Of a stretch of DNA of 64,000 bases, positions 9,819 to 27,559 are shown piece by piece. The translations under genes and the position numbers were made by a program. The DNA is from Obrimoposthia wandeli (lineage: Eukaryota). The number at the start of each line of letters is the position of its first letter. Position 1 is the first letter of the stretch. The notes beneath the pieces were generated by a model. It was not told the DNA's origin. It saw only the letters and a list, made by a program, of their open reading frames with translations, and ran no database searches. The DNA is taken from assembly GCA_977020255.1 (NCBI GenBank), contig CDROCS010001089.1, positions 496,001-560,000 of the forward strand, written 5' to 3'.

Positions 9819-10814
9819 TTAGACTTTAAATAACCAGTTATGCTTATCTTCAGTGAGGCCCCATTGGATATCGTTCATTGCTTGGCGCAATTTCTTAGTA
9901 ATAGGTCCTTCTTTGCCATCACCCACTTGATACTCCCTATCTTTATGGATAAAGGTGCCAACGGGTGCGAGTACTGCAGCTGTTCCAGATAAGGCCGCTT
10001 CACAGCTAGGTTTGCTAGAACGTTCGATTATTTCATCAACTGAAATTTCTCGTTCGCTGACCGTCATACCCATATCGCGTGCTAACGTCAAAATTGAATC
10101 ACGAGTAACGCCGTGTAAAAAGCTCTCATCTAATGCTTTAGTGATGATTTCGCCATCGTCAATTAATAAGAAGTTTGCAGCGCCTGTTTCTTGTGCGAAT
10201 CCACCTGGGCAGAATAGCACTTGATCAGCTTGGAACTTATCTCTCGCCTGCATGATCGGACGCAATGCGCTGGCGTAGTTGCCGCCGCTTTTTATCATGC
10301 CATTGTGCGGCGCACAGCGCATGCCGGTTTCATCTAATAATAGTCGTAGCCCCCCCGCATCACTCTTGAAGTATTCTCCGACCGGGGATAATAAGATATA
10401 TTGCAAAGAAGTGTCAGAAGGCGTTGCCGCTTTACCAATGGCTGGGTCGATACCAAAATGAGTAGGGCGAATATACATAGATCCAGGAGGTGCGGGTACA
10501 TCATCTGCATATTGTGCAACAGAATCTAAGATCATTTGTGCAGTCGCACTTTTATCAATAGCGGGTAGTGACAACAGCTCACTGCTTTGTGCAAAACGTG
10601 CTATATTTTTGTCCATGCGGAACAATTTAATTGATCCGTCAGGTTGCTTGAATGCTTTTAAACCTTCAAAACACGTGCTTGAATAATGTAATACATGGGC
10701 GCCGGGATGCAGTGTAATGCTATCACTCGCTACCATTTCAGCTTGGCTCCACTGAGAACCATCAAAACGAGAAATTGCCATTTGCGGCATAAAAACTGTA
10801 CCAAACGCAGCCAT
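9819..10814 (-). CDS. ilvE: Branched-chain amino acid aminotransferase (PLP class IV)
   Basis: LHYSSTCFEGLKAF, LFRMDKN, IKSGGNYA (PLP Lys), ETGAANF, LHGVTRDS, SGTAAV. Start placed at ATG 10814 after a GAGG RBS. Confidence 0.93.
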   Translation of the reverse strand: MAAFGTVFMPQMAISRFDGSQWSQAEMVASDSITLHPGAHVLHYSSTCFEGLKAFKQPDGSIKLFRMDKNIARFAQSSELLSLPAIDKSATAQMILDSVAQYADDVPAPPGSMYIRPTHFGIDPAIGKAATPSDTSLQYILLSPVGEYFKSDAGGLRLLLDETGMRCAPHNGMIKSGGNYASALRPIMQARDKFQADQVLFCPGGFAQETGAANFLLIDDGEIITKALDESFLHGVTRDSILTLARDMGMTVSEREISVDEIIERSSKPSCEAALSGTAAVLAPVGTFIHKDREYQVGDGKEGPITKKLRQAMNDIQWGLTEDKHNWLFKV

Positions 10815-11070
10815 CTGAAACCTCAAAAAATATAATATAGTTATTTGCACGAGAGTGTAGATTGTCAGATGATTAGCTTTCTACATCGACAATTACTTTA
10901 AGCCACCGATTGTAGTCACCCTCGCACCAAAAAGGAATTACTGGAGTTAATAAATATCGAGTATTTACAAATAAACTGGGGATAAAGACGCATTTTTAGT
11001 ATGATATGACGCTATTTATAAAAATCTTGGTTAGGCCAAATCTCAAAGGAGATAAAATGGGGGCAAGCAA

Positions 11071-12108
11071 TTGAATATTTTGGTAGTCGGGCCTTCTTGG
11101 GTTGGCGACATGGTAATGTCTCAATCTTTGCTATTGAGATTAAAAGCAGATAATCCCTATTGTAATATCGACGTGCTAGCACCGGATTGGTGTCGCCCTG
11201 TGTTGGCGAGAATGGCGCAAGTTAATCAGGCAATCGCAATGCCCGTAGGTCATGGCGCCCTGCAGTGGAAAGTTAGAAAACAAGTTGCGTTGCAGTTACA
11301 GCAAAACGATTACCAACAAAGTATTATTCTACCTAATTCTTTGAAGTCAGCTCTTGTCCCTTGGTTAGCTAAAATACCTCAGCGCACCGCTTGGCGTGGA
11401 GAAATGCGCTATGGCTTAATCAATGATATGCGCACACTAGATAAACAGGCATTTCCTTTAATGGTGCAGCGCTATATTGCATTAGCTGAAAATGAAAAAA
11501 GCTCCGCGCAGCAGCTCAAAGCTTTGTTGAAGCCAAGTTTAAGTGTTGATTATGAAGCGCAAGAGGCTGTCTTTAGCGCTTTTTCACTTTCTCTGTCATC
11601 AGAAATAATTGCTTTTTGCCCCGGGGCTGAATTTGGTCCCGCTAAACGTTGGCCTCACTATCACTTTGCTAAGTTAGCAGGATTGCTCATTGATCAAGGT
11701 AAAAAAATAATCTGCCTCGGCTCGGCTAAAGATACGCCAGTAATACAAGAGATTAAAGAGTTACTCAGCGAAGAGCAATTGCAGGAATTCGTTGATGTGT
11801 CGGGACAAACAAGCTTGACGCAAGCGATAGATATATTGGCCAAAGTAAGCGCCATTGTCTCTAATGATTCTGGGTTAATGCATATCGGAGCGGCAGTGAA
11901 TACCCCGATGCTAGCTTTATATGGTCCTACGAGTCCCGATTTCACTCCACCGCTTAGCGATAATGCAGAAGTCATAAGGTTAATAGATGGCTACATTAAG
12001 CTGCGTAAAGGAAATTTAGACCAAGGCTATCATCAAAGTATGGTAGATATACAACCAGAGGCAGTGTTAGAGCGGTTACAGGTCTTGTTAGATAAGGAAT
12101 CTGTGTGA
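11071..12108 (+). CDS. waaF: Lipopolysaccharide heptosyltransferase II
   Basis: ILVVGPSWVGDMVM, PNSLKSALVP, GEMRYGLIND, CPGAEFGPAKRWP, NDSGLMH, YGPTSPDFTPPL. Confidence 0.96.
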   Translation: MNILVVGPSWVGDMVMSQSLLLRLKADNPYCNIDVLAPDWCRPVLARMAQVNQAIAMPVGHGALQWKVRKQVALQLQQNDYQQSIILPNSLKSALVPWLAKIPQRTAWRGEMRYGLINDMRTLDKQAFPLMVQRYIALAENEKSSAQQLKALLKPSLSVDYEAQEAVFSAFSLSLSSEIIAFCPGAEFGPAKRWPHYHFAKLAGLLIDQGKKIICLGSAKDTPVIQEIKELLSEEQLQEFVDVSGQTSLTQAIDILAKVSAIVSNDSGLMHIGAAVNTPMLALYGPTSPDFTPPLSDNAEVIRLIDGYIKLRKGNLDQGYHQSMVDIQPEAVLERLQVLLDKESV

Positions 12109-13133
12109 GAGTATTAATTGTTAAAACATCCTCTATGGGAGATATCATACATACTTTACCCGCACTGACAGATGCGACTAATGCCATTGCAGGTATTCGC
12201 TTTGATTGGGTAGTCGAAGAGTCATTTAAAGAAATACCACAGTGGCACAGTGCGGTAGATAAAGTGATTCCGGTGGCAATTCGACGTTGGCGAAAATCTC
12301 CTTGGAAGGCATGGACTAGCGGTGAATGGCAAACTTTTAAAGAAAACTTGCAAGCACGTGAATACGACGCTGTTATTGATGCTCAAGGCTTGTTGAAAAG
12401 TGCATACTTAGTGGTACGCAATGCCAAAGGCGCTAGTTTTGGTTTAGATAAAGTCAGTGCAAAAGAGCCTTGGGCTAGCAGTGTTTATCAAACTCAGGTC
12501 AACATTGCTAAAAACCAACATGCAATAGAAAGAATTAGGCAATTATTTGCGCAATCTTTAGCTTACAAGCTACCAGAACAACAAGGCGAATTTGGTATTG
12601 CTGAACATTTTGACAGTAATGTCGTACAAGATTATTTGATTTTTAATCACAGTACGACACGAATAGATAAACACTATCCTGAACAGTACTGGTTAGAGTT
12701 AATAAAGCTAGCAACAGATCAGGGTTGGAAAATAAAGCTACCTTGGGGAAATGAGCAAGAAAAAAAGCGTGCACTAAGGCTTGCTCAAGAAAATGATAAT
12801 GTTGAAGTGTTAAAAAAACTCACTCTTTGTGAAGTAGCACAAGTTATTGCAAATGCAGCAGCTTGCGTCTCTGTTGATACTGGGCTTTCGCATTTAAGTG
12901 CCGCACTTAATAAGCCCAATATCACTTTGTTTGGCCCTACAGATCCAGGGTTAGTTGGAGGTTACGGTATAAATCAAGTAACACTATTAGCAGAAAACTA
13001 TGTAAAAGAGTGTGCGCAGAGCCGCATTGCTAATGAAAGTGTCGAACCCGCTGTTTTCAGACCATTACCAGCGTCTATTGTTTGGCATGAATTGCAAAAA
13101 TTATTGAAAAATCGTGCCTCTAAGGGAGTTTAA
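12105..13133 (+). CDS. waaC: Lipopolysaccharide heptosyltransferase I
   Basis: MRVLIVKTSSMGDIIHTLPALTDA, FDWVVEE, DAQGLLKSA, VDTGLSHL, LFGPTDP; overlaps the waaF stop. Confidence 0.96.
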   Translation: MRVLIVKTSSMGDIIHTLPALTDATNAIAGIRFDWVVEESFKEIPQWHSAVDKVIPVAIRRWRKSPWKAWTSGEWQTFKENLQAREYDAVIDAQGLLKSAYLVVRNAKGASFGLDKVSAKEPWASSVYQTQVNIAKNQHAIERIRQLFAQSLAYKLPEQQGEFGIAEHFDSNVVQDYLIFNHSTTRIDKHYPEQYWLELIKLATDQGWKIKLPWGNEQEKKRALRLAQENDNVEVLKKLTLCEVAQVIANAAACVSVDTGLSHLSAALNKPNITLFGPTDPGLVGGYGINQVTLLAENYVKECAQSRIANESVEPAVFRPLPASIVWHELQKLLKNRASKGV

Positions 13134-14439
13134 GTTGTTCATAAATCGCCCGATATTAAGTGTGGCAAGGCATTACGTTAATTTTAGTGTGTTCTTATTT
13201 CTGGCATTGTCAGTGGCTTTTAAAGGGAGCTACGCTATAAGTGGTGCTGTGCTTGTTTCAAGCTATCTCTTTTTGTTTAGTGCGCAAATTCGAGAAAAAA
13301 TAGCATTAACTAAGATTGAAAAAGGCCTAATAACAGTTTTAATTATGTATTTGGCCTCTAACGTCCTAGAGGTTGTTTTTTATGATGTTGCTATTAGAAA
13401 GATAGATTCTGAGAGTAAAATATTGGCATTCATCCCGCTTATTTTCTTACTAAATGCGGTAAAAATTAATGTTTTAACTACAATATTAGGGTTAGGTGTT
13501 GGTTGTTGCGGGTTATTTATATTGGCGATATATGAAAAGTATTATTTAGGTTTAGGCAGAGTTGGGTTGAATATAAATGCGATACAGTTGGGCAATATCG
13601 CACTGGCCTTTGGTTTGTTAACTATAATATTTGCGCCTGTTATTTATGCTGTTAGATTGCGCAGTGAATCTAATTTAAAAAAGCGCTGTAAGCTCGCAGC
13701 ATCGATTTGTGTTGTATTAGGTTTTTTAAGCATAGTAGCATCAATATTTACCTTGACCAGAGGTGGGTTAGTTTTTGTTCCTGTGTTGTTAGTGGTGGTC
13801 AGTTTTTATTATTTAGCACAAATTAAACGTTACTTTAGGCAGCTTTTGATTTTTACAGTATTAGTAGGCGCAGTTTTAATGCTAGTGATACCAAATACTC
13901 ATCTAGTTTCTAGAGTGGAAGTGGCATTTAAGAATGTTGAAAGCTATTTCGTAGAAGGCAATGTCAGTACCTCTAGCGGAATAAGGCTAGAGTTATGGAA
14001 AGTTGCAGCGATTATCATCATGGATAACCCAGTATTGGGGGTTGGTGATAAGCAGTATATGGCGGAGAAAAAGAAGCTAATTAAGCGGGGAGAGATAAGC
14101 CCAGTGGTGCTGAATTATGGGCATTCTCATAATGCATATTTTTATGCAGCTGTGCGCAGAGGGGGGATAGGCTTGTTTATATTATTGGCGCTGTTATTTT
14201 ATCCCGTATTAGTAGCGCATCAGGAACTTAAACATCACATCAAATCTAGTCACCGTCAAGCGCAGAAAGCTCCGGCAGTTGCCTTGCTGGTGTTTGGTTT
14301 GTTTTTTATATTCGCCAATTTAACGCAAACGCTATTTGCCCATAACAGCGGTATGATAATGTATACGGGTATACTAATTATATTGACTTCTTTGATGTTG
14401 GCTAGGCGTGAAAAAAATCACTCAAATGTTCCACATTGA
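13114..14439 (+). CDS. O-antigen ligase (WaaL/Wzy_C) family membrane protein
   Basis: About 12 TM segments, NAIQLG, TRGG, SSGIRLELW...NPVLGVG and HSHN motifs, inside the LPS cluster. Confidence 0.8.
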   Translation: MPLREFKLFINRPILSVARHYVNFSVFLFLALSVAFKGSYAISGAVLVSSYLFLFSAQIREKIALTKIEKGLITVLIMYLASNVLEVVFYDVAIRKIDSESKILAFIPLIFLLNAVKINVLTTILGLGVGCCGLFILAIYEKYYLGLGRVGLNINAIQLGNIALAFGLLTIIFAPVIYAVRLRSESNLKKRCKLAASICVVLGFLSIVASIFTLTRGGLVFVPVLLVVVSFYYLAQIKRYFRQLLIFTVLVGAVLMLVIPNTHLVSRVEVAFKNVESYFVEGNVSTSSGIRLELWKVAAIIIMDNPVLGVGDKQYMAEKKKLIKRGEISPVVLNYGHSHNAYFYAAVRRGGIGLFILLALLFYPVLVAHQELKHHIKSSHRQAQKAPAVALLVFGLFFIFANLTQTLFAHNSGMIMYTGILIILTSLMLARREKNHSNVPH

Positions 14440-17372: not shown

Positions 17373-18797
17373 GTGCTTGAATTAACGATGCCGGAATTTA
17401 ACAAAACTCAAATATTAGTCGTTGGCGACATTATGCTTGACCGCTATTGGCACGGGGCAACCGATAGAGTATCCCCTGAAGCTCCAGTACCTGTTATCAA
17501 TGTAACACGACAAGATGATAGACCTGGAGGCGCGGCCAACGTAGCGCTTAATACTGCAGCACTTGGCGCAAAAACTCACTTAATGGGGCTGGTGGGCAAG
17601 GATGAAGCAGCGACAGTATTAGCATCAAGGCTCCAAGCGGCAGGCGTGGGCTGTGATTTTACCCAGAGCCAAGGCGAGCCCACCATTATGAAATTGCGGG
17701 CAATTAGTCGCAATCAGCAGCTGATCCGTATGGATTTTGAACAGCGCTTTTCCAGTGATTATGCAGCCAGCATTACAGCCTCAGTATCTAAGCAGATAGA
17801 AAGTTGCGACGTGTTAATTATATCCGATTATAACAAGGGAACTTTGAGCGATTGCCAAAGCCTTATTGCACTCGCAAAAAAACACCACAAACGTGTGTTA
17901 GTTGATCCTAAAGGAAGTGATTATCGACCTTACAAAGGCGCGACTTTATTAACGCCTAACATGTCTGAATTTGAGGCGGTTGTTGGAAAGTGCCACACTG
18001 AAGAGCAAGTTATTAGTCGCGCAAGAGCATTAATTGTTGAATTAGAGCTAGAGTGCTTGCTTATTACTCGCAGTGAGAAAGGTATGACCTTGCTGCAACA
18101 AGAAGGCACAGAAATACATTTTCCGGCCCGCAGCCATGAAGTGTTTGATGTTACAGGTGCAGGGGATACCGTTATATCAACGTTAGCTGCAGCTCTGGGT
18201 GCGGGTGAAAGTATGCAAAAGGCCGTCGCTATTGCCAATATGGCGGCGGGCATAGCCATTGGCAAGCTTGGGACATACGCAATCAGTGGTCCAGAAATAA
18301 GAAGAGAAATAGCACTTACCAAGCGCAGCGCTCGTGGAGTGGTTAGTGACGAGCAATTATTAATAGCGATAGAAGATGCCCGTTTAGCAGGCGAAAAAAT
18401 TGTTTTTACCAATGGCTGCTTTGATATATTACACGCAGGCCATGTTGGTTACTTAGAGCAGGCAAGGCAACTAGGGCAGCGCTTAGTAGTAGGGATTAAC
18501 TCAGATGCCTCAGTGAAGCGTTTAAAGGGTGAAGGTCGACCTATAAACTCTGAAGATAGACGTATGATAGTGCTCTCTAGTTTAGAAGCAGTCGATTGGG
18601 TGGTTTGTTTTGATACGCCCACCCCCGAACACTTATTAGAGCTGATTCGGCCCGAAGTGTTAGTTAAAGGCGGAGATTACGGTATCGAAGGTGTTGTTGG
18701 CGGTGATTTTGTACGTAGTTACGGGGGGGATGTGCAAGTGTTATCTCTGCTAGATAATTGTTCTACAACGGCAATTGTTGAGCAAATTAAAGGGTAG
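17373..18797 (+). CDS. hldE: Bifunctional D-glycero-beta-D-manno-heptose-7-P kinase / heptose-1-P adenylyltransferase
   Basis: VGDIMLDRYWHG, RVSPEAPVP, DVTGAGDTV, FTNGCFDILHAGHV, KGGDY. Confidence 0.97.
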   Translation: MLELTMPEFNKTQILVVGDIMLDRYWHGATDRVSPEAPVPVINVTRQDDRPGGAANVALNTAALGAKTHLMGLVGKDEAATVLASRLQAAGVGCDFTQSQGEPTIMKLRAISRNQQLIRMDFEQRFSSDYAASITASVSKQIESCDVLIISDYNKGTLSDCQSLIALAKKHHKRVLVDPKGSDYRPYKGATLLTPNMSEFEAVVGKCHTEEQVISRARALIVELELECLLITRSEKGMTLLQQEGTEIHFPARSHEVFDVTGAGDTVISTLAAALGAGESMQKAVAIANMAAGIAIGKLGTYAISGPEIRREIALTKRSARGVVSDEQLLIAIEDARLAGEKIVFTNGCFDILHAGHVGYLEQARQLGQRLVVGINSDASVKRLKGEGRPINSEDRRMIVLSSLEAVDWVVCFDTPTPEHLLELIRPEVLVKGGDYGIEGVVGGDFVRSYGGDVQVLSLLDNCSTTAIVEQIKG

Positions 18798-18861: not shown

Positions 18862-19659
18862 TTAACTCGTTAATAGTTGATGATATTTAGCAACATTTGA
18901 GCGTAAGTTCTGTTCATTTATCGTGCCTATTACAGCGCTGTTCACTGCAGATTGTGAAAAAATCAGCTTTAAACTTGCAAGAATTAGGTCTTCATCTGCA
19001 TTTGCTTGGATATGGCCAGAAGCAAAGGCTTTTTTGATAAAAATACCTTTGTTATGCTGCTGGGCGTATTGAATTACCGGCAGCTCATCACGCATGGCTA
19101 AGTTGTAAGTAACCATCGCGCAATCGCTGTGCTGCAAAGCTGAAATCCCACCCGCTATGGTTTTCGTCGACATTCCCGTTGCGCGAATTTTGCCCTGCGC
19201 TTTGAGTTTGTTTAAAGTCTCTAGTGCTAAATCTTGTTCAATGATTTTAAGATCATCACCATTTGAATGAATCATCACAATGTCTAAATAATCGGTATTT
19301 AAGCGCTGTAAACTGCGTTCGACACTCAGCGTCAGCGCTTTTTCACTAAAGTCGAAATAAGATACCCCAGTATCGTTGTTAAACTCCTCTCCAGCTTTAG
19401 AACTAAGCACCCAGTGTTGTCTATCAAAAGGGTTTAGCAGTTGGCCTAAGCGTTGCTCGCTAAGCCCGTATGCGGGAGCGGTATCTAATAAATTGATGCC
19501 TAACTCTTTGCAACAACTTAGTAGATTTAGTACTTGTTGATCATCGGGGATCGTGAACTTAGTAGGATATTTAACACCTTGATCTCGGCCAATCTTAACG
19601 GTGCCAAAGCCAATAGGGCTAACTGCTACGCCTGTGTTGGCTACTGTTTTGGTCGTCAT
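18862..19659 (-). CDS. Aldo/keto reductase (resembles Pseudomonas PA4992-type)
   Basis: SPIGFGTVKIGRDQGVKYP, GINLLDTAPAYG, SKAGEEF, SLQRLNTDYLDIVMIH, GKIRATGMS. Start placed at ATG 19659, 4 bp after the upstream stop. Confidence 0.9.
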   Translation of the reverse strand: MTTKTVANTGVAVSPIGFGTVKIGRDQGVKYPTKFTIPDDQQVLNLLSCCKELGINLLDTAPAYGLSEQRLGQLLNPFDRQHWVLSSKAGEEFNNDTGVSYFDFSEKALTLSVERSLQRLNTDYLDIVMIHSNGDDLKIIEQDLALETLNKLKAQGKIRATGMSTKTIAGGISALQHSDCAMVTYNLAMRDELPVIQYAQQHNKGIFIKKAFASGHIQANADEDLILASLKLIFSQSAVNSAVIGTINEQNLRSNVAKYHQLLTS

Positions 19660-19663
19660 AGGT

Positions 19664-20857
19664 TCAAGCATTTGCATCAACCCAAGCAGGTAGCGCAATA
19701 TCTGGATTGCAAAGTTCAGTGAGTGTGCTGTTAGGTATCATGTTTTTCGGTGTTAGTTGTTGCTGTTTAAACAGAGCGATTACTTTGTCGCTCAAATCAG
19801 GTGCGAGTGCCAGTTTAGTCGGCCAAGCAACCACATAGTTGCTTTCGCTGTGTAAGTAAGCGCAATCAGGGCGTGATAAGTTGCCCTGCTTAGGCTCCGC
19901 TCGGTTCACTCGCAAGCTACTCCACTGCGCCTCTTCTAGCGTTACCCAAGGTAGTATTTTAGCGGTGAGGGCTTGCGCCGCGACTATTTGCTGTGCGCTA
20001 TCTCGCTGCACACCTGTTTCTGCAATGTCGCCGCCGAAATACCAAGTGAAGCTGCCATCTGCGTTGATATGATGGGTAATTGTCACCAATGGTTTGCTAC
20101 TCGCGCCAATACAATGTGCATAAATAGGTAAGTTAGTGCGGTGCGTCACTATTGCCATGTGTAGTGGACGCAGCTGCATTTGCAAAGCTGTAATATTCAG
20201 TGCATCTAAAATTGCACCGTTTCCCTCGCCTGCGGTAAAAATAAAGCGCTGGGCAGTAATGCTTAATTGCTGCTGCTCGCAAGTCAAACCTGTAACATTT
20301 TGCGCACTATCGCGTTGCCATTGGCAGTTTTGTGTATCAACTTTTAAAATGCGACTAGCAAGCTTAGAAGTTAATTGCTTAAACAGAGAAGGGGTGTCGA
20401 GCACAATTTCGTTGAGCTTATATAAATTACCTTTAAACTCAGGATGCTGAAAAACTGCGGGATAATCAGCATTCGCAACTGAGTCTACTCGCCCACTCAT
20501 TGATTTTTTAGCGAAAAAAGAAGTGATTTTTGCACCAAGAGAACGCTGAGACCATAGGTAATGAGCGTGGCTTAAAGTAGTCACGCCGCTTAAATCTACA
20601 TCACCTTCACCCGCTAAACACTGCTTCCAACGCGCTGGCATTTCTTTAATGGCATCAGATGCTTGCGAGAGTACGCCATTGAGTGCGTATTTCATGCCTC
20701 CGTGAATAATGCCTTGAGAGCGAATACTTTGGCCACCACCAATGCTGTTCGCTTCTAATAATAATACATCAAAGCCTTGTTTCGTTAGGCTGTTAAGCAT
20801 CCACAGTCCTGCTATTCCAGCGCCAACAATAACAATGTCAGTGTTTAATTCTCTCAT
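19664..20857 (-). CDS. FAD-dependent oxidoreductase (DAO/glycine-oxidase fold; resembles Pseudomonas PA4991-type)
   Basis: DIVIVGAGIAGLW Rossmann motif, GGGQSIRSQGIIHGGMKYAL, LRPLHM, VNRAEP, WPTKLALAP. Confidence 0.88.
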   Translation of the reverse strand: MRELNTDIVIVGAGIAGLWMLNSLTKQGFDVLLLEANSIGGGQSIRSQGIIHGGMKYALNGVLSQASDAIKEMPARWKQCLAGEGDVDLSGVTTLSHAHYLWSQRSLGAKITSFFAKKSMSGRVDSVANADYPAVFQHPEFKGNLYKLNEIVLDTPSLFKQLTSKLASRILKVDTQNCQWQRDSAQNVTGLTCEQQQLSITAQRFIFTAGEGNGAILDALNITALQMQLRPLHMAIVTHRTNLPIYAHCIGASSKPLVTITHHINADGSFTWYFGGDIAETGVQRDSAQQIVAAQALTAKILPWVTLEEAQWSSLRVNRAEPKQGNLSRPDCAYLHSESNYVVAWPTKLALAPDLSDKVIALFKQQQLTPKNMIPNSTLTELCNPDIALPAWVDANA

Positions 20858-20904
20858 TGAATCTCTCTGCGTAATGATGGATAAAACTGAGGACAGTTAT
20901 CGCA

Positions 20905-21435
20905 CTAGTTGTTAATGATATGTTTTGCAAATGCTGCTAAATCAGCATAAACGGGAACATCTGCAGCTATTCCGGCATCTAAAGTACGCTGGCCTTTACC
21001 TGTTAACACTAGCGCCGCTGCTATATTGGCACTGTTTGCTGCTTTTAAATCGCTTAGGCTGTCGCCAACAAAGTAAATATCACTTAAATTTGGATAATCA
21101 TCCATGATATCTAAAAGCATGCCCGGTAAAGGTTTACGACATTTACATAAGGCGTCAGGCAAGTGAGGGCAAAACACTATTTTGTCGATCACGCCACCCG
21201 CGCTATGTACTAAGGAATGCATTTTTTGATGCATCGCGGCTAGGGTGTCTAATGAATAATAACCGCGGCCAATACCCGATTGATTAGTAGCAACCGCGAT
21301 TTTATAACCAGCGCACGATAAATCAGCAATGGCTTGTATGCTATTGGGGATAGCGCGCCATTGATCAACAGTGCGAATGTAATTATCGCTGTCATAGTTA
21401 ATAACGCCATCGCGATCGAGTATGATTAATTTCAT
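20905..21435 (-). CDS. gmhB: D-glycero-beta-D-manno-heptose 1,7-bisphosphate 7-phosphatase
   Basis: ILDRDGVIN, ATNQSGIGRG, CPHLPDALCKCRKPLPGM, VGDSLSDL. Confidence 0.95.
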   Translation of the reverse strand: MKLIILDRDGVINYDSDNYIRTVDQWRAIPNSIQAIADLSCAGYKIAVATNQSGIGRGYYSLDTLAAMHQKMHSLVHSAGGVIDKIVFCPHLPDALCKCRKPLPGMLLDIMDDYPNLSDIYFVGDSLSDLKAANSANIAAALVLTGKGQRTLDAGIAADVPVYADLAAFAKHIINN

Positions 21436-21440
21436 GCTGG

Positions 21441-22022
21441 TTATTGCGATGCCTGTTGTTTGGCAAGTGCGCGTCTGTCTGCATCTTCACATAGCCAGTG
21501 GCCTGCGAATATATGCGCTTCTTGGACACGGGCTGTTTCAGTCGCCGGTACAGCAAGAATATGATCAGCTATATCTTTTAATAACCCGCCATCTTCCCCT
21601 GTCCAAGCCCAGCTAGTCGCGCCTATTTTTTGGCCGGTTTCAATAGCGTGGATAATATTTTTACTATTACCCGATGTAGATATACCAATGATGATGTCTT
21701 CAGGCTTCGCTAATGCTTCTACTTGGCGGCTAAACACAGTATCGAAAGAGAAATCATTGGCGTGGGCTGTCAGTAAAGAAGTGTCAGTGGTTAAAGCGAT
21801 AGCAGCTAATGGTGCGCGTTCGGCTTTATAGCGCACTACAAACTCAGTTGCTAAATGTTGGCTATCGGCCGCGCTTCCGCCATTGCCCATAAAAAATAAT
21901 TTACCGCCGCGATCAAAGCAACGATCAATATGCTCTGCTAGTAACTGGAGTGTTTGTTCGCATTGAACCATTTTTTCAAACAATTGCTGGTGGCGCTGCA
22001 ACGCATTTAAGTAGCTAGACAT
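21441..22022 (-). CDS. gmhA: Phosphoheptose isomerase
   Basis: GNGGSAADSQHLATEF, ALTTDTS, ANDFSFDTVFSRQ, ISTSGNS, TARVQEAH. Confidence 0.95.
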   Translation of the reverse strand: MSSYLNALQRHQQLFEKMVQCEQTLQLLAEHIDRCFDRGGKLFFMGNGGSAADSQHLATEFVVRYKAERAPLAAIALTTDTSLLTAHANDFSFDTVFSRQVEALAKPEDIIIGISTSGNSKNIIHAIETGQKIGATSWAWTGEDGGLLKDIADHILAVPATETARVQEAHIFAGHWLCEDADRRALAKQQASQ

Positions 22023-22138: not shown

Positions 22139-23458
22139 TTGAGAATTATCTATAACTGCATTTTTTACCTGCTTACACCATTCTTGTTGCTCAAGTTATG
22201 GCGCCGCGGTGCAAAAGCACCTGCTTATCGCCAACGTATTTTAGAACGATTTGGCTATGCTTCTAAAAGTTTTGCCATTGCACCATTATGGGTACACGCC
22301 GTATCTGTAGGAGAAACGGTGGCGATAGCGCCGTTGTTAATGCAGCTATTAGAAAAGCACCCGCAGCTGCACATTCTTATTACAACATCAACGCCAACAG
22401 GTGCAGATAGAGTGGCTAAGTTATTCGTCAATTACCCTCAGGTGTGGCATCAGTATTGCCCTTATGATCAGTCTGGTGCAGTGTCGAGATTTGTAAATAC
22501 CCACAAGCCATTAGGGTTATTGATTGTTGAAACTGAGCTGTGGCCCAATATGCTGGCTAAATGCCAAGCTAAAGGCATTGCTGTGTTACTGGCTAATGCT
22601 AGAATGTCGGAAAAATCAGCAGCAGGCTACGCTAAAATTGCCAGTCTTACCAGTGCAATGCTATTGCAACTAGACTCATTAGTTGCGCAGTATCCAAGTG
22701 ATGGGGAGCGCTTTAAAAAGCTCGGTTTACCAGCAGAAAAATTATCGATAAGCGGCAGTATTAAATTTGATATAGATGTGCCTGAATCGCTGCTGCAAAA
22801 TGCAGCGCAGCTACGTTTGCAAATAGGCGGGCGCCCAGTGCTTATTCTCGCCAGTTCCCACCAAAGTGAAGAGCAAGGTGTGTTGCAGCTAATGGATGAA
22901 ATATGGGTAAAACACCCTCACTTATTACTCATAATAGTGCCCAGACATCCTGAAAGATTTGATGAAGTCACCCACTTGGCAGAGCAAGTTACCGATTTAG
23001 TGGCTAGGCGCTCAAAAAACGATTTAACTATGCAGAGCAAAGTTTATATTGGTGATACTATGGGCGAACTTAGCATGCTGTATGGGGCCGCTGATTTAGC
23101 TATAGTGGGCGGCAGTTTCGTGGCGATGGGCGGGCAAAATCCAATAGAACCTGCCAGTGTCGGTAAAGGGGTATTGATGGGGCCACAGCAATTTAATTTT
23201 TCGGTAATATGCCCACAATTAGAAGCAGCGGGTGGTATGCGCAGCTGCGCCGATTACCAGCAACTATCAGAGTATTTATTTGCACTATTAGCCGAACCAT
23301 TAGTTATGCGGGAAATGGGTGTGAAAGCGCAGCAATACTTTTTATCTCAGCGCGGCGCGACTGATTATTTGTTAGGTAAAATAGAAAAAGTGTTATTGAA
23401 TCAAGCGCGTGCTTTTAAAATTGACAGCATCATCGACAAAGACCGGGGTTTAAAGTGA
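22139..23458 (+). CDS. waaA: 3-deoxy-D-manno-octulosonic acid transferase
   Basis: WVHAVSVGET, ETELWPN, NARMSEKS, GSIKFD, VPRHPERF, GDTMGEL, GGQNPIEPA. Confidence 0.96.
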   Translation: MRIIYNCIFYLLTPFLLLKLWRRGAKAPAYRQRILERFGYASKSFAIAPLWVHAVSVGETVAIAPLLMQLLEKHPQLHILITTSTPTGADRVAKLFVNYPQVWHQYCPYDQSGAVSRFVNTHKPLGLLIVETELWPNMLAKCQAKGIAVLLANARMSEKSAAGYAKIASLTSAMLLQLDSLVAQYPSDGERFKKLGLPAEKLSISGSIKFDIDVPESLLQNAAQLRLQIGGRPVLILASSHQSEEQGVLQLMDEIWVKHPHLLLIIVPRHPERFDEVTHLAEQVTDLVARRSKNDLTMQSKVYIGDTMGELSMLYGAADLAIVGGSFVAMGGQNPIEPASVGKGVLMGPQQFNFSVICPQLEAAGGMRSCADYQQLSEYLFALLAEPLVMREMGVKAQQYFLSQRGATDYLLGKIEKVLLNQARAFKIDSIIDKDRGLK

Positions 23459-23677: not shown

Positions 23678-24931
23678 ATGGAAAGTTTTGAGTACCGCAA
23701 CAATAGTTTGCACTGCGAAAACGTATTACTCAGCAAAGTGGCAGAGGAGTATGCTACGCCAACTTATGTCTATTCTAGAGATGCCATTGAGCTTGGCTAT
23801 CTTGCATATGCCAATGCACTAGAAGGCAGAAACGACATGGTTTGCTACGCGATGAAAGCAAACAGTAATATCGCAGTATTAAACGTATTAGCGCGTTTAG
23901 GTGCCGGTTTTGATGTGGTTTCTCAAGGCGAGTTAGAGCGCGTATTGACAGCGGGGGGGCAAGCTAGTCGTATTGTGTTTTCAGGTGTATCAAAACAATC
24001 TAGTGAAATTCGCCGCGCTTTAGAAGTGGGCATCCACTGTTTTAATATTGAATCAGAATCGGAGTTGATTCGTATCAATGCGGTTGCTGAGCAAATGGCA
24101 ATGCAGGCACCTATCTCTTTTCGTATAAATCCCAATGTTGACGCGGGCACTCATCCATATATATCTACGGGTCTTAAAGAAAATAAATTTGGTATCGACA
24201 TTGAAGAAGCGTTGCGCATTTATCAACACGGCGCAAGTTTGAGCAACGTTAATATCATTGGCATGGATTGTCATATTGGTAGTCAGCTAACTCAAATAGC
24301 CCCTTTTATGGATGCTATGGATAAATTGCTAGCACTGATCGATACCTTAGCAGAACATGGTATTACACTTAAGCATTTAGATCTTGGTGGCGGGTTAGGT
24401 GTTTGTTACACCGATGAGCAACCACCCAGTGCTGCTGAGTATATCGGAGCTGTTTTAGAAAAAATTGGCGAGAGAAAGCTGTCTCTAATTTTTGAACCGG
24501 GGCGATCTATTGTGGCAAATGCAGGGGTATTATTGACTGAAGTTGAATACCTAAAACATAACGAAAGCAAAAATTTCGCCATTGTAGATGCTGCGATGAA
24601 TGACTTGCTACGCCCTGCTTTGTATAGCGCCTATCAAGAAATTATTCCGTTACAGATTAATGAAGATATAGCAAAGCATAACTATGATGTGGTCGGCCCT
24701 GTTTGTGAAACGAGTGATTTTTTGGGAAAAGATCGTCAGCTAGCCATTGCCCCAGGAGATTTACTGGCGGTATGTTCTGCGGGCGCTTATGGTTTTACAA
24801 TGAGTTCAAACTACAACACTCGAACACGCGCCGCTGAAATAATGATTGATGATAATGAAATTTATGAAATCCGCAAACGAGAAACTTTTGCAGATTTAGT
24901 GAAAGGTGAAAAATTACTACCTGAAGACTAA
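23678..24931 (+). CDS. lysA: Diaminopimelate decarboxylase
   Basis: YAMKANSN (PLP Lys), GFDVVSQGE, HPYISTGLKENKFG, HIGSQL, EPGRS, GPVCETSD, GAYG...SNYN. Confidence 0.97.
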   Translation: MESFEYRNNSLHCENVLLSKVAEEYATPTYVYSRDAIELGYLAYANALEGRNDMVCYAMKANSNIAVLNVLARLGAGFDVVSQGELERVLTAGGQASRIVFSGVSKQSSEIRRALEVGIHCFNIESESELIRINAVAEQMAMQAPISFRINPNVDAGTHPYISTGLKENKFGIDIEEALRIYQHGASLSNVNIIGMDCHIGSQLTQIAPFMDAMDKLLALIDTLAEHGITLKHLDLGGGLGVCYTDEQPPSAAEYIGAVLEKIGERKLSLIFEPGRSIVANAGVLLTEVEYLKHNESKNFAIVDAAMNDLLRPALYSAYQEIIPLQINEDIAKHNYDVVGPVCETSDFLGKDRQLAIAPGDLLAVCSAGAYGFTMSSNYNTRTRAAEIMIDDNEIYEIRKRETFADLVKGEKLLPED

Positions 24932-24938
24932 TCCAAAC

Positions 24939-24968
24939 TGGCTATGATCATTATTGTGATCATAGCCA
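24939..24968. repeat. Intergenic stem-loop between lysA and dapF
   Basis: TGGCTATGATCA-TTATTG-TGATCATAGCCA, a perfect 12-bp stem with no U-tract, so a processing/stability hairpin or weak terminator. Confidence 0.5.
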
Positions 24969-25010
24969 TATCAATAAGTGTGATACTTAAAATAAAAACG
25001 GAAAAGAATA

Positions 25011-25844
25011 ATGCTACTACGTTTTACCAAAATGCATGGGTTAGGTAATGACTTTATGGTTGTTGATTTAGTCACTCAGCGCTTCAAATTTAATTCGCAA
25101 ATGGTAAAACGTCTTGGGGATCGAAAATTAGGCATTGGCTTTGACCAGCTACTTATTATTGAAATTCCTACCGATCCAGATATGGACTTTCGCTACCGTA
25201 TTTTCAATGCCGATGGCAGCGAAGTTGAACATTGTGGCAATGGCGCGCGATGCTTCGCACTTTTTGTGAAAGACAAGAGACTCACTGTTAAAAAGCAGGT
25301 TAAGGTTGAAACCGCTAAAGGTAATATGCTGCTGACTATTCGCGATGATCGCCAAGTGGAAGTCGATATGGGTGCACCGATACTCTCTCCGGCTGAAATA
25401 CCTTTTATAGCGGCCGAGCAGCAAAAAACCTACCCTTTACAAGTCGCAGGGCAGCAGTGGCAAATCTCAGCTATATCGATGGGAAACCCCCATGCAGTAA
25501 TAGTCGTTGATGATGTGCAAACAACAGCGGTGGAATCTTTAGGGCCTGCTATTCAAGCGATGAACTGTTTTCCAAATGGCGCCAATATTGGCTTCATGCA
25601 AATAGTCAGTGACAGTGAAATTAACTTACGTGTTTACGAGCGCTCTGTAGGTGAAACGCTTGCCTGCGGCACTGGGGCATGTGCAGCGGTAGTTGCTGGT
25701 AGGCAGCGCGGTTTGCTTAGTGAGCGAGTTAAAGTAAACGTTACAGGTGGTTGTCTAGAAATTTTTTGGCAAGGCCAAGACAGTGATCCAGTAATAATGA
25801 CAGGGCCTGCAACAAGTGTTTTTGAAGGGAAAATTTTTATATGA
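25011..25844 (+). CDS. dapF: Diaminopimelate epimerase
   Basis: FTKMHGLGNDF, EVEHCGNGARCF, SMGNPHAV, YERSVGETLACGTGACA. Confidence 0.97.
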   Translation: MLLRFTKMHGLGNDFMVVDLVTQRFKFNSQMVKRLGDRKLGIGFDQLLIIEIPTDPDMDFRYRIFNADGSEVEHCGNGARCFALFVKDKRLTVKKQVKVETAKGNMLLTIRDDRQVEVDMGAPILSPAEIPFIAAEQQKTYPLQVAGQQWQISAISMGNPHAVIVVDDVQTTAVESLGPAIQAMNCFPNGANIGFMQIVSDSEINLRVYERSVGETLACGTGACAAVVAGRQRGLLSERVKVNVTGGCLEIFWQGQDSDPVIMTGPATSVFEGKIFI

Positions 25845-26545
25845 GTAACACCGAAGATAAACAAATTAATACACCGAGTATAACTCGCGAACAAGTTGCC
25901 GCCTTCTTGCAAAAAGATGCAGATTTTTTTATTGAGTATGAGTATCTATTAGAAGTACTATCGGTACCGCATGAATCGGGAGCAGCGGTTTCTTTTGTTG
26001 AGAGGCAGTCTTCTATGCTGCGCGAAAAGAACAAAAAACTCACTGTTCATTTATCTGATTTTTGCGACGCAGCGCGGCACAATGATGTGCAGTTTGAAAA
26101 GACTAAACGCATGGTGCTATCGCTATTAGATGCACAAACACTAGATGATTTAGGTGATGCGTTAGAAGAGAGCTTATGCCGAGATTTTTACGGAGATGCT
26201 ACATCGCTTATTTTGTTTGACGATAAGCAACTAACCGTTAATAACCGACGCATGATGCCACGTGAAATGGCAGGCATTGTAGAGCCGCTGATGATTTCTA
26301 ATCAACCTAGTTGTGGCAACTTATCAGCCGCTGAGAATCACTTTTTATTCGAAAATCGCTCTGCTATGATTCAATCCGCCGCGGTTATTCCCTTAGTACA
26401 AGGGGAGACAATGGGTTTGTTAGGCATTGGTAGTTTTGATGAAGATTATTTTCAAAGTAGCCAAGGAACAATGTTTTTAACTTATGTTGGTGAGGTTTTA
26501 AGCCGTGTGGCAAGTCGCATTTTGCAAAGCAAAGTTGAGCCTTAA
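25841..26545 (+). CDS. DUF484 (YigA-family) protein
   Basis: VAAFLQKDADFF, LSVPHESGAAVSFVERQ, QGTMFL; canonical position between dapF and xerC. Confidence 0.9.
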   Translation: MSNTEDKQINTPSITREQVAAFLQKDADFFIEYEYLLEVLSVPHESGAAVSFVERQSSMLREKNKKLTVHLSDFCDAARHNDVQFEKTKRMVLSLLDAQTLDDLGDALEESLCRDFYGDATSLILFDDKQLTVNNRRMMPREMAGIVEPLMISNQPSCGNLSAAENHFLFENRSAMIQSAAVIPLVQGETMGLLGIGSFDEDYFQSSQGTMFLTYVGEVLSRVASRILQSKVEP

Positions 26546-26620
26546 ATAGTACAATTCAAAGCGTGTTGTATGTTATAAAAGTAGTTATTTGCAGAAACTT
26601 TTGTTATCAATAAGAGACGA

Positions 26621-26664
26621 CTGTCCAGTTAAAAAGATTATAAAAATGAATACGGACAGCCATG
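26621..26664. repeat. Possible internally deleted remnant of MITE family A
   Basis: CTGTCCAGTTAAAAAG matches the element end at 15/16, and CGGACAGCCATG (11/12) follows about 20 bp later in inverted orientation. Confidence 0.4.
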
Positions 26665-26671
26665 TCAACAA

Positions 26672-27559
26672 GTGATGAATATGAGCTCTTTTAAAGCAAT
26701 ATCAAACCTGAGTTTGCCGCTTGAACAATATATCGCTTACTTACAGCGTCAATCGTTAGCTAACAACAGTTTAGTCAACTATCGTAGTGATTTGTCTCGC
26801 TTTCTGGATTTTATCGCTGACTATCGATTAAAAAAGTGGCAAAGTATAAGTGAAAAACAAGCTCAAGCTTTTTTTTGGGACGCTCATAACAGCGGAAAAT
26901 CAAGAGCAAGTATTAATCGTCAGCTCAGTACTGTACGAGGATTTTTTAACTATTTAAGACGTACTTTACAACTTGATTTTGACCCATTGCTTGGTCTGAA
27001 TTTACCAAAAGAATTAGCGGTTGTAGCGGCGACCGTAACCCCTATTAATTTACCATTATTGCTAAAATTTACAGTAATAGATTTTATGACTGCGCGAGAC
27101 AAAGCGCTATTAACGCTGCTCATCGAATGTGGTATTACTATTACTGAACTGGCAGCATTAGAGCTGTTTAGCCTAAATATAGCGCAAAGCAGCGTGGTTT
27201 GTGTTGAGCAAAAAGGTAAGCAAAGAGAAATTAAACTCAGCCAAATCTGTTTAGAAGCTTTAGAGTGTTGGATGCAATATCGTGTATCAATATCTTCGCT
27301 AGAGCCTGCACTGTTTATTTCTAAACAGGGACGGCGCCTCAGCGTTCGTGCGATTCAACTGCGCATTCAGCATAGAGGGCAACAAATTACTACTAGCAAC
27401 TTGAGTGTTAGAAAATTACAGCAAGCTAGAGATCAGCAACGATTGGCTGATGATAAAACCACTATAGATCAAACAGCTGAGCACGAAAACGCCCTAGCCC
27501 AGCAACAACTGATAACAGCATATTTACATGCGCACCCAAGAGCGAATAAAAATGATTAA
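26672..27559 (+). CDS. xerC: XerC-like tyrosine recombinase homolog with degenerate catalytic site
   Basis: Canonical dapF-DUF484-xerC-yigB position, core-binding domain (SINRQLSTVRGFFNYL), ARDKALL, LFISKQGRRLSVRAIQ and terminal AHPRA. Catalytic Arg, His-x-x-Arg and Tyr are missing. Confidence 0.85.
   Translation: MMNMSSFKAISNLSLPLEQYIAYLQRQSLANNSLVNYRSDLSRFLDFIADYRLKKWQSISEKQAQAFFWDAHNSGKSRASINRQLSTVRGFFNYLRRTLQLDFDPLLGLNLPKELAVVAATVTPINLPLLLKFTVIDFMTARDKALLTLLIECGITITELAALELFSLNIAQSSVVCVEQKGKQREIKLSQICLEALECWMQYRVSISSLEPALFISKQGRRLSVRAIQLRIQHRGQQITTSNLSVRKLQQARDQQRLADDKTTIDQTAEHENALAQQQLITAYLHAHPRANKND

Follow-up and report, generated by a model that had tools for sequence, protein, structure and literature searches.

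Pseudomonas aeruginosa carries, in one operon, the genes PA4991 and PA4992, both of which are essential in PAO1, in PA14 and in cystic-fibrosis sputum (PMC4741190). PA4991 is a monomeric flavoenzyme of the GR2 family, and its residues His53, Arg316 and Lys345 are common to glycerol-3-phosphate dehydrogenase; it shows no amino-acid or amine oxidase activity and no activity on glycerol 3-phosphate, the latter assayed with NAD(P)+ at 340 nm only, and the authors of its structure expected a substrate bearing a phosphate or a carboxylate (PMC4741190). The PDB entries 4EXA and 4EXB have been identified as PA4992, an aldo-keto reductase (AKR), and NADP+ binding is known for PA4992 itself only (PMC3539698). 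Both structures were solved as those of candidate drug targets, and for a decade the two proteins have been an orphan essential pair (PMC4741190, PMC3539698). Here we describe an operon in which orthologues of this pair stand directly behind gmhA and gmhB, two genes of heptose synthesis. It lies in a stretch of 64,000 nucleotides (hereafter the window), corresponding to positions 496,001 to 560,000 of the forward strand of contig CDROCS010001089.1 in the Obrimoposthia wandeli assembly GCA_977020255.1; coordinates below are those of the window unless a locus is named. This arrangement, together with the neighbourhoods of the pair in other lineages, suggests that the two enzymes may act in or near the synthesis of ADP-heptose for the lipopolysaccharide (LPS) core.

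The operon is encoded on the minus strand. Its first gene is gmhA (sedoheptulose-7-phosphate isomerase; 21441-22022), which is followed by gmhB (D-glycero-beta-D-manno-heptose 1,7-bisphosphate 7-phosphatase; 20905-21435), by the gene for a flavin adenine dinucleotide (FAD)-dependent oxidoreductase of the GR2/DAO family (19664-20857), and by the gene for an AKR of 265 amino acids (18862-19659). The original prediction, made from the sequence by eye, had described four tightly packed minus-strand genes, and the open reading frames confirm this exactly, with gaps of 5 bp between gmhA and gmhB, 47 bp between gmhB and the FAD gene, and 4 bp between the FAD gene and the AKR gene. The four genes form one operon. 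The AKR gene starts at the ATG at 19659; a longer reading frame that opens with a TTG and extends to 19698 overlaps the FAD gene, and the 265-residue protein read from the ATG aligns with its relatives from the first residues onward. A scan of the operon for consensus promoters and terminators gave a result no better than that obtained with shuffled sequence.

The identities of the first two genes were assessed by profile and structure searches. GmhB scores 223 bits on the NCBIfam equivalog NF006506 (cut-off, 178), carries the HAD motif DRDG at its N terminus, and has as its top PDB matches 4PNH and 3L8H, which are D,D-heptose 1,7-bisphosphate phosphatases (E values of 1e-49 to 1e-51). GmhA contains a SIS domain, and its best NCBIfam matches are GmhA models (E = 3e-53), yet it stays below the equivalog cut-offs, reaching 181 of the 276 bits required by NF010546 and 178 of the 209 required by TIGR00441. 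GmhA structures are nevertheless its top PDB matches: the closest solved structures (1TK9, 2XBL and 1X92; E = 6e-48) are without exception those of phosphoheptose isomerases, and DiaA is far behind at 7e-29. The window GmhA is nearer to the GmhA structures of Campylobacter and Burkholderia than to that of P. aeruginosa. The best matches of the window flavoenzyme are in an Oceanospirillaceae metagenome-assembled genome (MAG; 91% identity) and in the Osedax symbionts Rs1 and Rs2 (69-73% identity), and the organism that bears the operon is, judged by sequence, a member of the Oceanospirillaceae/Nitrincolaceae near the Osedax symbionts.

The FAD-dependent oxidoreductase belongs to PF01266 and matches 5EZ7, the structure of PA4991, over residues 3-394 of 397 (E = 1.4e-113), while the AKR belongs to PF00248 (108 bits) and matches 4EXA/4EXB (E = 1e-84). 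The resemblance to the PA4991/PA4992 pair near hldE and waaA, which had been noted when the window was first read, is therefore borne out at the level of full-length orthologues. The FAD protein has the sequence GAGIAG, a GxGxxG dinucleotide-binding motif, at residue 12. Its residues H52, R319 and K348 correspond to His53, Arg316 and Lys345 of PA4991 and are invariant in our alignments A1 and A3. In the AKR, the catalytic residues D59, Y64, K88 and H131 are all present. With these residues kept, both redox enzymes look catalytically competent.

An exhaustive search for the flavoenzyme family (E<=1e-30) returned 658 representatives of 50%-identity clusters, several of which lie on contigs too short to reveal their context. 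Neighbourhoods were compared at 171 loci, made up of 80 species-representative genomes, 11 look-ups of distant representatives and 80 metagenomes; the metagenome loci are mostly Pseudomonas-like, and few new arrangements were gained from them. Of the 166 loci that extend far enough to include one, 165 have an AKR gene directly downstream of the flavoenzyme gene and co-directional with it, with a median estimated gap of 14 bp, and because of this constancy the FAD and AKR genes are an obligate two-gene module.

The module stands beside ADP-heptose genes in at least five distinct arrangements. In the window and in L001-L008, which together form a single clade (100/100 support), gmhA-gmhB is directly ahead of the pair. 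The order waaA<- ->FAD-AKR <-hldE<-msbA is seen in Pseudomonas, Amphritea, Neptuniibacter, Kistimonas, Aestuariirhabdus and a distant gammaproteobacterial MAG; most Pseudomonadales loci have hldE convergent with the pair, and most loci of the Pseudomonadales type have waaA as its divergent neighbour (55 of the 80 metagenome loci), as do L088 and L089. Ahead of the pair at L088 are waaA, a deacetylase gene and a GT2 glycosyltransferase gene. A co-directional order, hldE->FAD->AKR, is found at L083, L084, L132 and L158. Finally, a gene for a stand-alone adenylyltransferase of the HldC type lies directly upstream of the pair at L087, L091, L093, L094 and L096 and directly downstream of it at L090, in lineages that have Kiritimatiellia and Verrucomicrobiota as their closest relatives with a name. 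This protein matches domain II of rfaE best (E values of 1e-43 to 4e-54), and the assignment of this cytidylyltransferase-like neighbour as CoaD was rejected, since CoaD models reach only about 1e-6. In a maximum-likelihood tree of 53 flavoenzyme representatives, the Pseudomonadales-type, co-directional-hldE and stand-alone-hldC arrangements fall in three separate major clades. Because three kinds of heptose gene repeatedly adjoin the pair, and do so in varied orders, a functional tie of the pair to the ADP-heptose branch appears well supported by gene context. The direct linkage to gmhA and gmhB had originally been taken to point to the heptose branch specifically; the tie to that branch is much stronger than the first reading could show, as it recurs in distant lineages and in independent arrangements that involve hldE, stand-alone hldC or gmhA-gmhB.

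We favor, at about even chances, the interpretation that the pair performs a redox step in or alongside the ADP-heptose branch of LPS core synthesis. The essentiality of PA4991 and PA4992, as well as the phosphate or carboxylate predicted for the substrate, fits this interpretation (PMC4741190). The proposed chemistry, a flavin-dependent oxidation followed by a stereospecific reduction with NADPH, is plausible by analogy, and in analogous systems there is a precedent for a two-enzyme redox epimerization in which an AKR is the reducing half. With its GlpD-like His/Arg/Lys set, the flavoenzyme would oxidize a secondary alcohol beside an anionic group of a heptose intermediate. The prime candidate would be the hydroxyl on C6, adjacent to the phosphate on C7, in heptose 7-phosphate or heptose 1,7-bisphosphate, because the exocyclic CH(OH)-CH2-OPO3 tail of these heptose phosphates would resemble glycerol 3-phosphate most closely. 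In the window, the operon would bracket both intermediates, with GmhA making heptose 7-phosphate and GmhB taking the 7-phosphate off the 1,7-bisphosphate. Heptose 1-phosphate and ADP-heptose may be considered as alternative substrates because the pair is also linked to an adenylyltransferase and to the Nudix-like protein described below. The AKR would then reduce the ketone stereospecifically with NADPH. Flavin oxidation coupled to NADPH reduction would make the process one-way, unlike the reversible HldD reaction, so that heptose stereochemistry would be altered or corrected in one direction only, and the pair would not be just a substitute for HldD. What we infer from the residues and neighbours just described is the substrate, the carbon that is attacked and the direction in which the reaction runs.

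Several considerations weigh against a redox step in the heptose branch. The ADP-heptose pathway, as known from Escherichia coli, is complete without these enzymes. From a comparison of Fischer configurations we infer that sn-glycerol 3-phosphate corresponds to the L-glycero, not the D-glycero, 7-phosphorylated heptose, and a GlpD-like site might thus take the L epimer, which would be a mismatch with a simple D-to-L conversion. Because the Pseudomonadales arrangement is shared by inheritance, it counts as one observation. A populous Legionellales-like clade keeps the pair between gidA and pncB, without LPS neighbours, and in one derived clade it is the glucuronate isomerase gene uxaC, not a heptose gene, that overlaps the start of the flavoenzyme gene and is translationally coupled to it. 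As neither of these clades shows the heptose link, the substrate of the family could be another anionic sugar or could vary between clades; alternatively, the heptose linkage may simply have been lost in some of them.

Some details of these divergent loci are worth recording. The named members of the Legionellales-like clade are Aquicella lusitana and A. siphonis, and the pair is found in this clade at L086:9001-10982 and L135:3147-5104. The loci of the uxaC clade are L092:7577-9004, L097:6430-7977, L098:759-2183 and L120:81-1310, the last of which was assigned by context; a gene for a PHP-domain phosphoesterase follows the AKR gene at L097, and the flavoenzyme gene of L092 has no AKR gene with it at all. 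Linkage to uxaC as a general feature of the family was rejected, as it is confined to this one derived clade. At L082, L085 and L168 the neighbours are unrelated genes. The contig that bears the pair at L085:9001-11049 is labelled Myxococcota, and in the flavoenzyme tree this pair clusters with that of Pokkaliibacter, a gammaproteobacterium (100/100 support), a placement that suggests either gene transfer or a binning error.

The same loci bear on a second explanation, in which the pair would have a housekeeping or repair role on some other anionic metabolite, such as Kdo (3-deoxy-D-manno-octulosonic acid), a uronate or a small phosphorylated alcohol, and would owe its position among LPS genes to inherited gene order or to co-regulation with envelope genes. 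The Legionellales-like clade without LPS neighbours, the uxaC-FAD-AKR order with the phosphoesterase gene next in line at L097, and the three loci with unrelated neighbours are all as this explanation would have them. In Gammaproteobacteria, moreover, waaA, whose product acts on Kdo, flanks the pair as constantly as hldE does, and the glycerol 3-phosphate assay of PA4991, which relied on NAD(P)+ alone, may have missed a flavin-linked activity on small phosphorylated alcohols. What such a role hardly explains by inheritance alone is that gmhA/gmhB, hldE and stand-alone hldC adjoin the pair in separate clades and in varied orders, and we consider it rather unlikely.

A more specific proposal was that of the original prediction, in which the pair replaces a missing hldD: the flavoenzyme would make a 6-keto-heptose, which the AKR would reduce to the L-glycero form. 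As had been noted at the outset, hldD is not among the heptose genes visible here. A tblastn search with E. coli HldD (E<=1e-3) found no homologue in the window, which is all of the genome that it covered, though hldE, gmhA, gmhB, waaC and waaF are present; the same search found no hldD orthologue within 8-10 kb of the pair in the 171 related loci. Its matches there were GalE-like short-chain dehydrogenases/reductases (SDRs) with 27-29% identity, encoded beside hldE at 6 of the 171 loci (five Pseudomonas-like metagenome loci and L051). In the five metagenome loci (L109:11104-12150, L114, L115, L131 and L165), the gene for the GalE-like SDR lies between the Nudix-like gene and hldE, and the protein of these loci has 28-29% identity to E. 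coli HldD and scores below the cut-off of the HldD model. In a plasmid collection, HldD was found only on mislabelled chromosomes or chromids of other taxa, and the flavoenzyme was absent, so the collection is uninformative on co-occurrence. The enzymes of the pair are themselves not HldD, having GR2 and AKR folds instead of the SDR fold and no sequence similarity to HldD or TIGR02197. A replacement would nonetheless be chemically plausible, given the GlpD-like phosphate-binding set of the flavoenzyme, and the pair stands beside hldE or hldC, where hldD stands in some other bacteria.

The meaning of these absences is limited, however. For the organism of the window, 64 kb is all that hldD was judged absent from, and in Pseudomonas hldD is distant from the waa genes, so its absence from a cluster means little. 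P. aeruginosa has both the PA4991/PA4992 pair and rfaD/hldD (PA3337); rfaD mutants of this species have been obtained in three studies, and rfaD is not essential. With rfaD deleted, adsorption of phiYY, a phage that depends on LPS, was about 10% instead of about 90% (PMC7452160). Since the loss of rfaD alters LPS while PA4991 and PA4992 are intact, the pair does not supply HldD function in P. aeruginosa, a finding close to one that the original prediction had itself named as counting against it. Furthermore, the pair is essential and rfaD is dispensable, a difference that a redundant epimerase would not explain and that therefore indicates some other role. On the other side, deletion of rfaD did not cause polymyxin hypersensitivity, and the authors suggested D,D-heptose as a possible replacement (PMC10269820), a result that leaves some room for the HldD-independent idea. 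Overall, the coexistence of the pair with rfaD in P. aeruginosa and the adsorption defect of the rfaD mutant leave HldD-independent epimerization without support, and replacement of HldD by the pair is distinctly unlikely. We rate as equally improbable a variant in which the pair would epimerize C6 irreversibly on heptose 7-phosphate or heptose 1,7-bisphosphate, providing a second, HldD-independent route to L-glycero-D-manno-heptose that would be the sole route in the gmhA-gmhB-pair clade. If true, epimerization of C6 at the level of the sugar phosphate would account for PA4991/PA4992 being essential as well as for P. aeruginosa rfaD mutants being viable.

Many loci have a third gene, which comes after the AKR gene, is co-directional with it and occupies the place of PA4993. 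It encodes a protein of about 290 amino acids and is present at 47 genome loci and 58 metagenome loci (of 80 in each set), being found in most Pseudomonas loci, in some Amphritea and Endozoicomonadaceae loci, and in Kistimonas and Aestuariirhabdus. Examples are L027:12043-12918, L009:12007-12819, L028:11987-12844 and L044:11985-12854. Profile searches with the PA4993-like protein gave no Pfam or NCBIfam match, and the sole PDB profile match, a weak one, was a Nudix protein. Its Nudix box is degenerate, and the three glutamates at box positions are invariant. The top PDB matches of its AlphaFold (AF2) model (predicted local distance difference test [pLDDT] score, 92) are all Nudix proteins, with ADP-ribose pyrophosphatases first (Foldseek E of about 1e-3; VIA-align Z of 9.4 over 146 residues, with 17% identity). 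There is thus moderate evidence, from modelling, that the PA4993-like protein is an ADP-sugar pyrophosphatase-like partner, and such a partner would be consistent with an ADP-sugar as the currency of the module. The gene is absent from the window and the window clade, and also from Neptuniibacter and Hahella, and is therefore dispensable for the function of the pair. A role of the pair in the editing or recycling of ADP-heptose or heptose phosphates, in which the Nudix-like protein would split ADP-heptose species and the redox pair would correct or remove wrong or damaged heptose, draws on the frequency of this gene, its invariant glutamates and its nearest fold, and could link the essentiality of the pair to the build-up of a toxic intermediate, but with the gene missing from those lineages, a structural match that is only moderate and no damaged heptose species known to us, it is highly unlikely.

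In the window, the operon lies between hldE-msbA and waaA, and lpxL is also among the flanking genes. hldE (heptose-7-phosphate kinase/heptose-1-phosphate adenylyltransferase; 17373-18797, plus strand) is convergent with the operon and scores 713 bits on NF008454 (cut-off, 521). waaA (Kdo transferase; 22139-23458, plus strand) is divergent from gmhA across a 116-bp intergenic region and scores 460 bits on NF004388 (cut-off, 438). Also on the plus strand are waaF (heptosyltransferase II; 11071-12108) and waaC (heptosyltransferase I; 12105-13133), found by tblastn with E. coli WaaF and WaaC at 55% and 58% identity, respectively, and waaL (O-antigen ligase; 13114-14439), recognized by its Wzy_C domain. 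Profile and tblastn scores thus agree with the first reading of the window, in which the operon was flanked by hldE and waaA with waaC and waaF nearby. Within 9819-14439, the genes 5' of waaF are one for an ilvE-like class IV aminotransferase and glnE, not hldD, which we take to be the gene order of the Pseudomonas waa region. A typical lysA-dapF-DUF484-xerC block follows waaA (23678-27559).

Our search of the literature found no paper that links PA4991/PA4992, or any FAD/AKR pair, to ADP-heptose, and the heptose link of the pair appears to be new. The gmhA-gmhB-FAD-AKR operon and the operons that join the pair to hldC thus offer a fresh lead, open to experiment, on two essential genes that have remained orphans, and the operon together with the recurrent hldE/hldC linkage in distant phyla points to a short list of candidate substrates, namely heptose 7-phosphate, heptose 1,7-bisphosphate, heptose 1-phosphate and ADP-heptose. 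If the pair does act in the heptose branch, it would constitute a new enzymatic step in a textbook LPS pathway that also yields an innate-immune signal, and a function would be assigned to a very widespread family.

The closest described system is the P. aeruginosa PA4991/PA4992 pair itself, which has about 50% identity to the window pair and identical residues in its active sites; there, too, the FAD gene precedes the AKR gene and the pair lies between waaA and hldE. The window differs in having gmhA-gmhB ahead of the pair in one operon and in lacking a Nudix-like gene of the PA4993 type after the AKR gene. Relative to the E. coli hldD-waaF-waaC-waaL operon, the window keeps the waaF-waaC-waaL order, and it is the ilvE-like gene that stands upstream, not hldD. 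HldD acts in the same pathway and carries out oxidation and re-reduction at one carbinol, as proposed for the pair; it is, however, a single SDR with tightly bound NADP+ that makes no net redox change and works reversibly, whereas the pair joins a GR2 flavoenzyme to a TIM-barrel AKR, both of unrelated fold, and would use NADPH and reduce flavin. With GlpD/GlpO and the glycine oxidase ThiO, the window flavoenzyme has the GR2 fold in common at less than 18% identity, and the His/Arg/Lys set with which GlpD binds phosphate beside the oxidized carbinol is also kept. The nearest analogue of the proposed chemistry is the epimerization of deoxynivalenol (DON) by a dehydrogenase and the AKR DepB, in which a ketone is made and the AKR then reduces it to the opposite configuration. 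The DON 3-epimerase AKR is a detectable PDB relative of the window AKR (E = 5e-11), at the level of the AKR superfamily only, and the oxidizing partner and the substrate of the DON system differ from those of the window pair.

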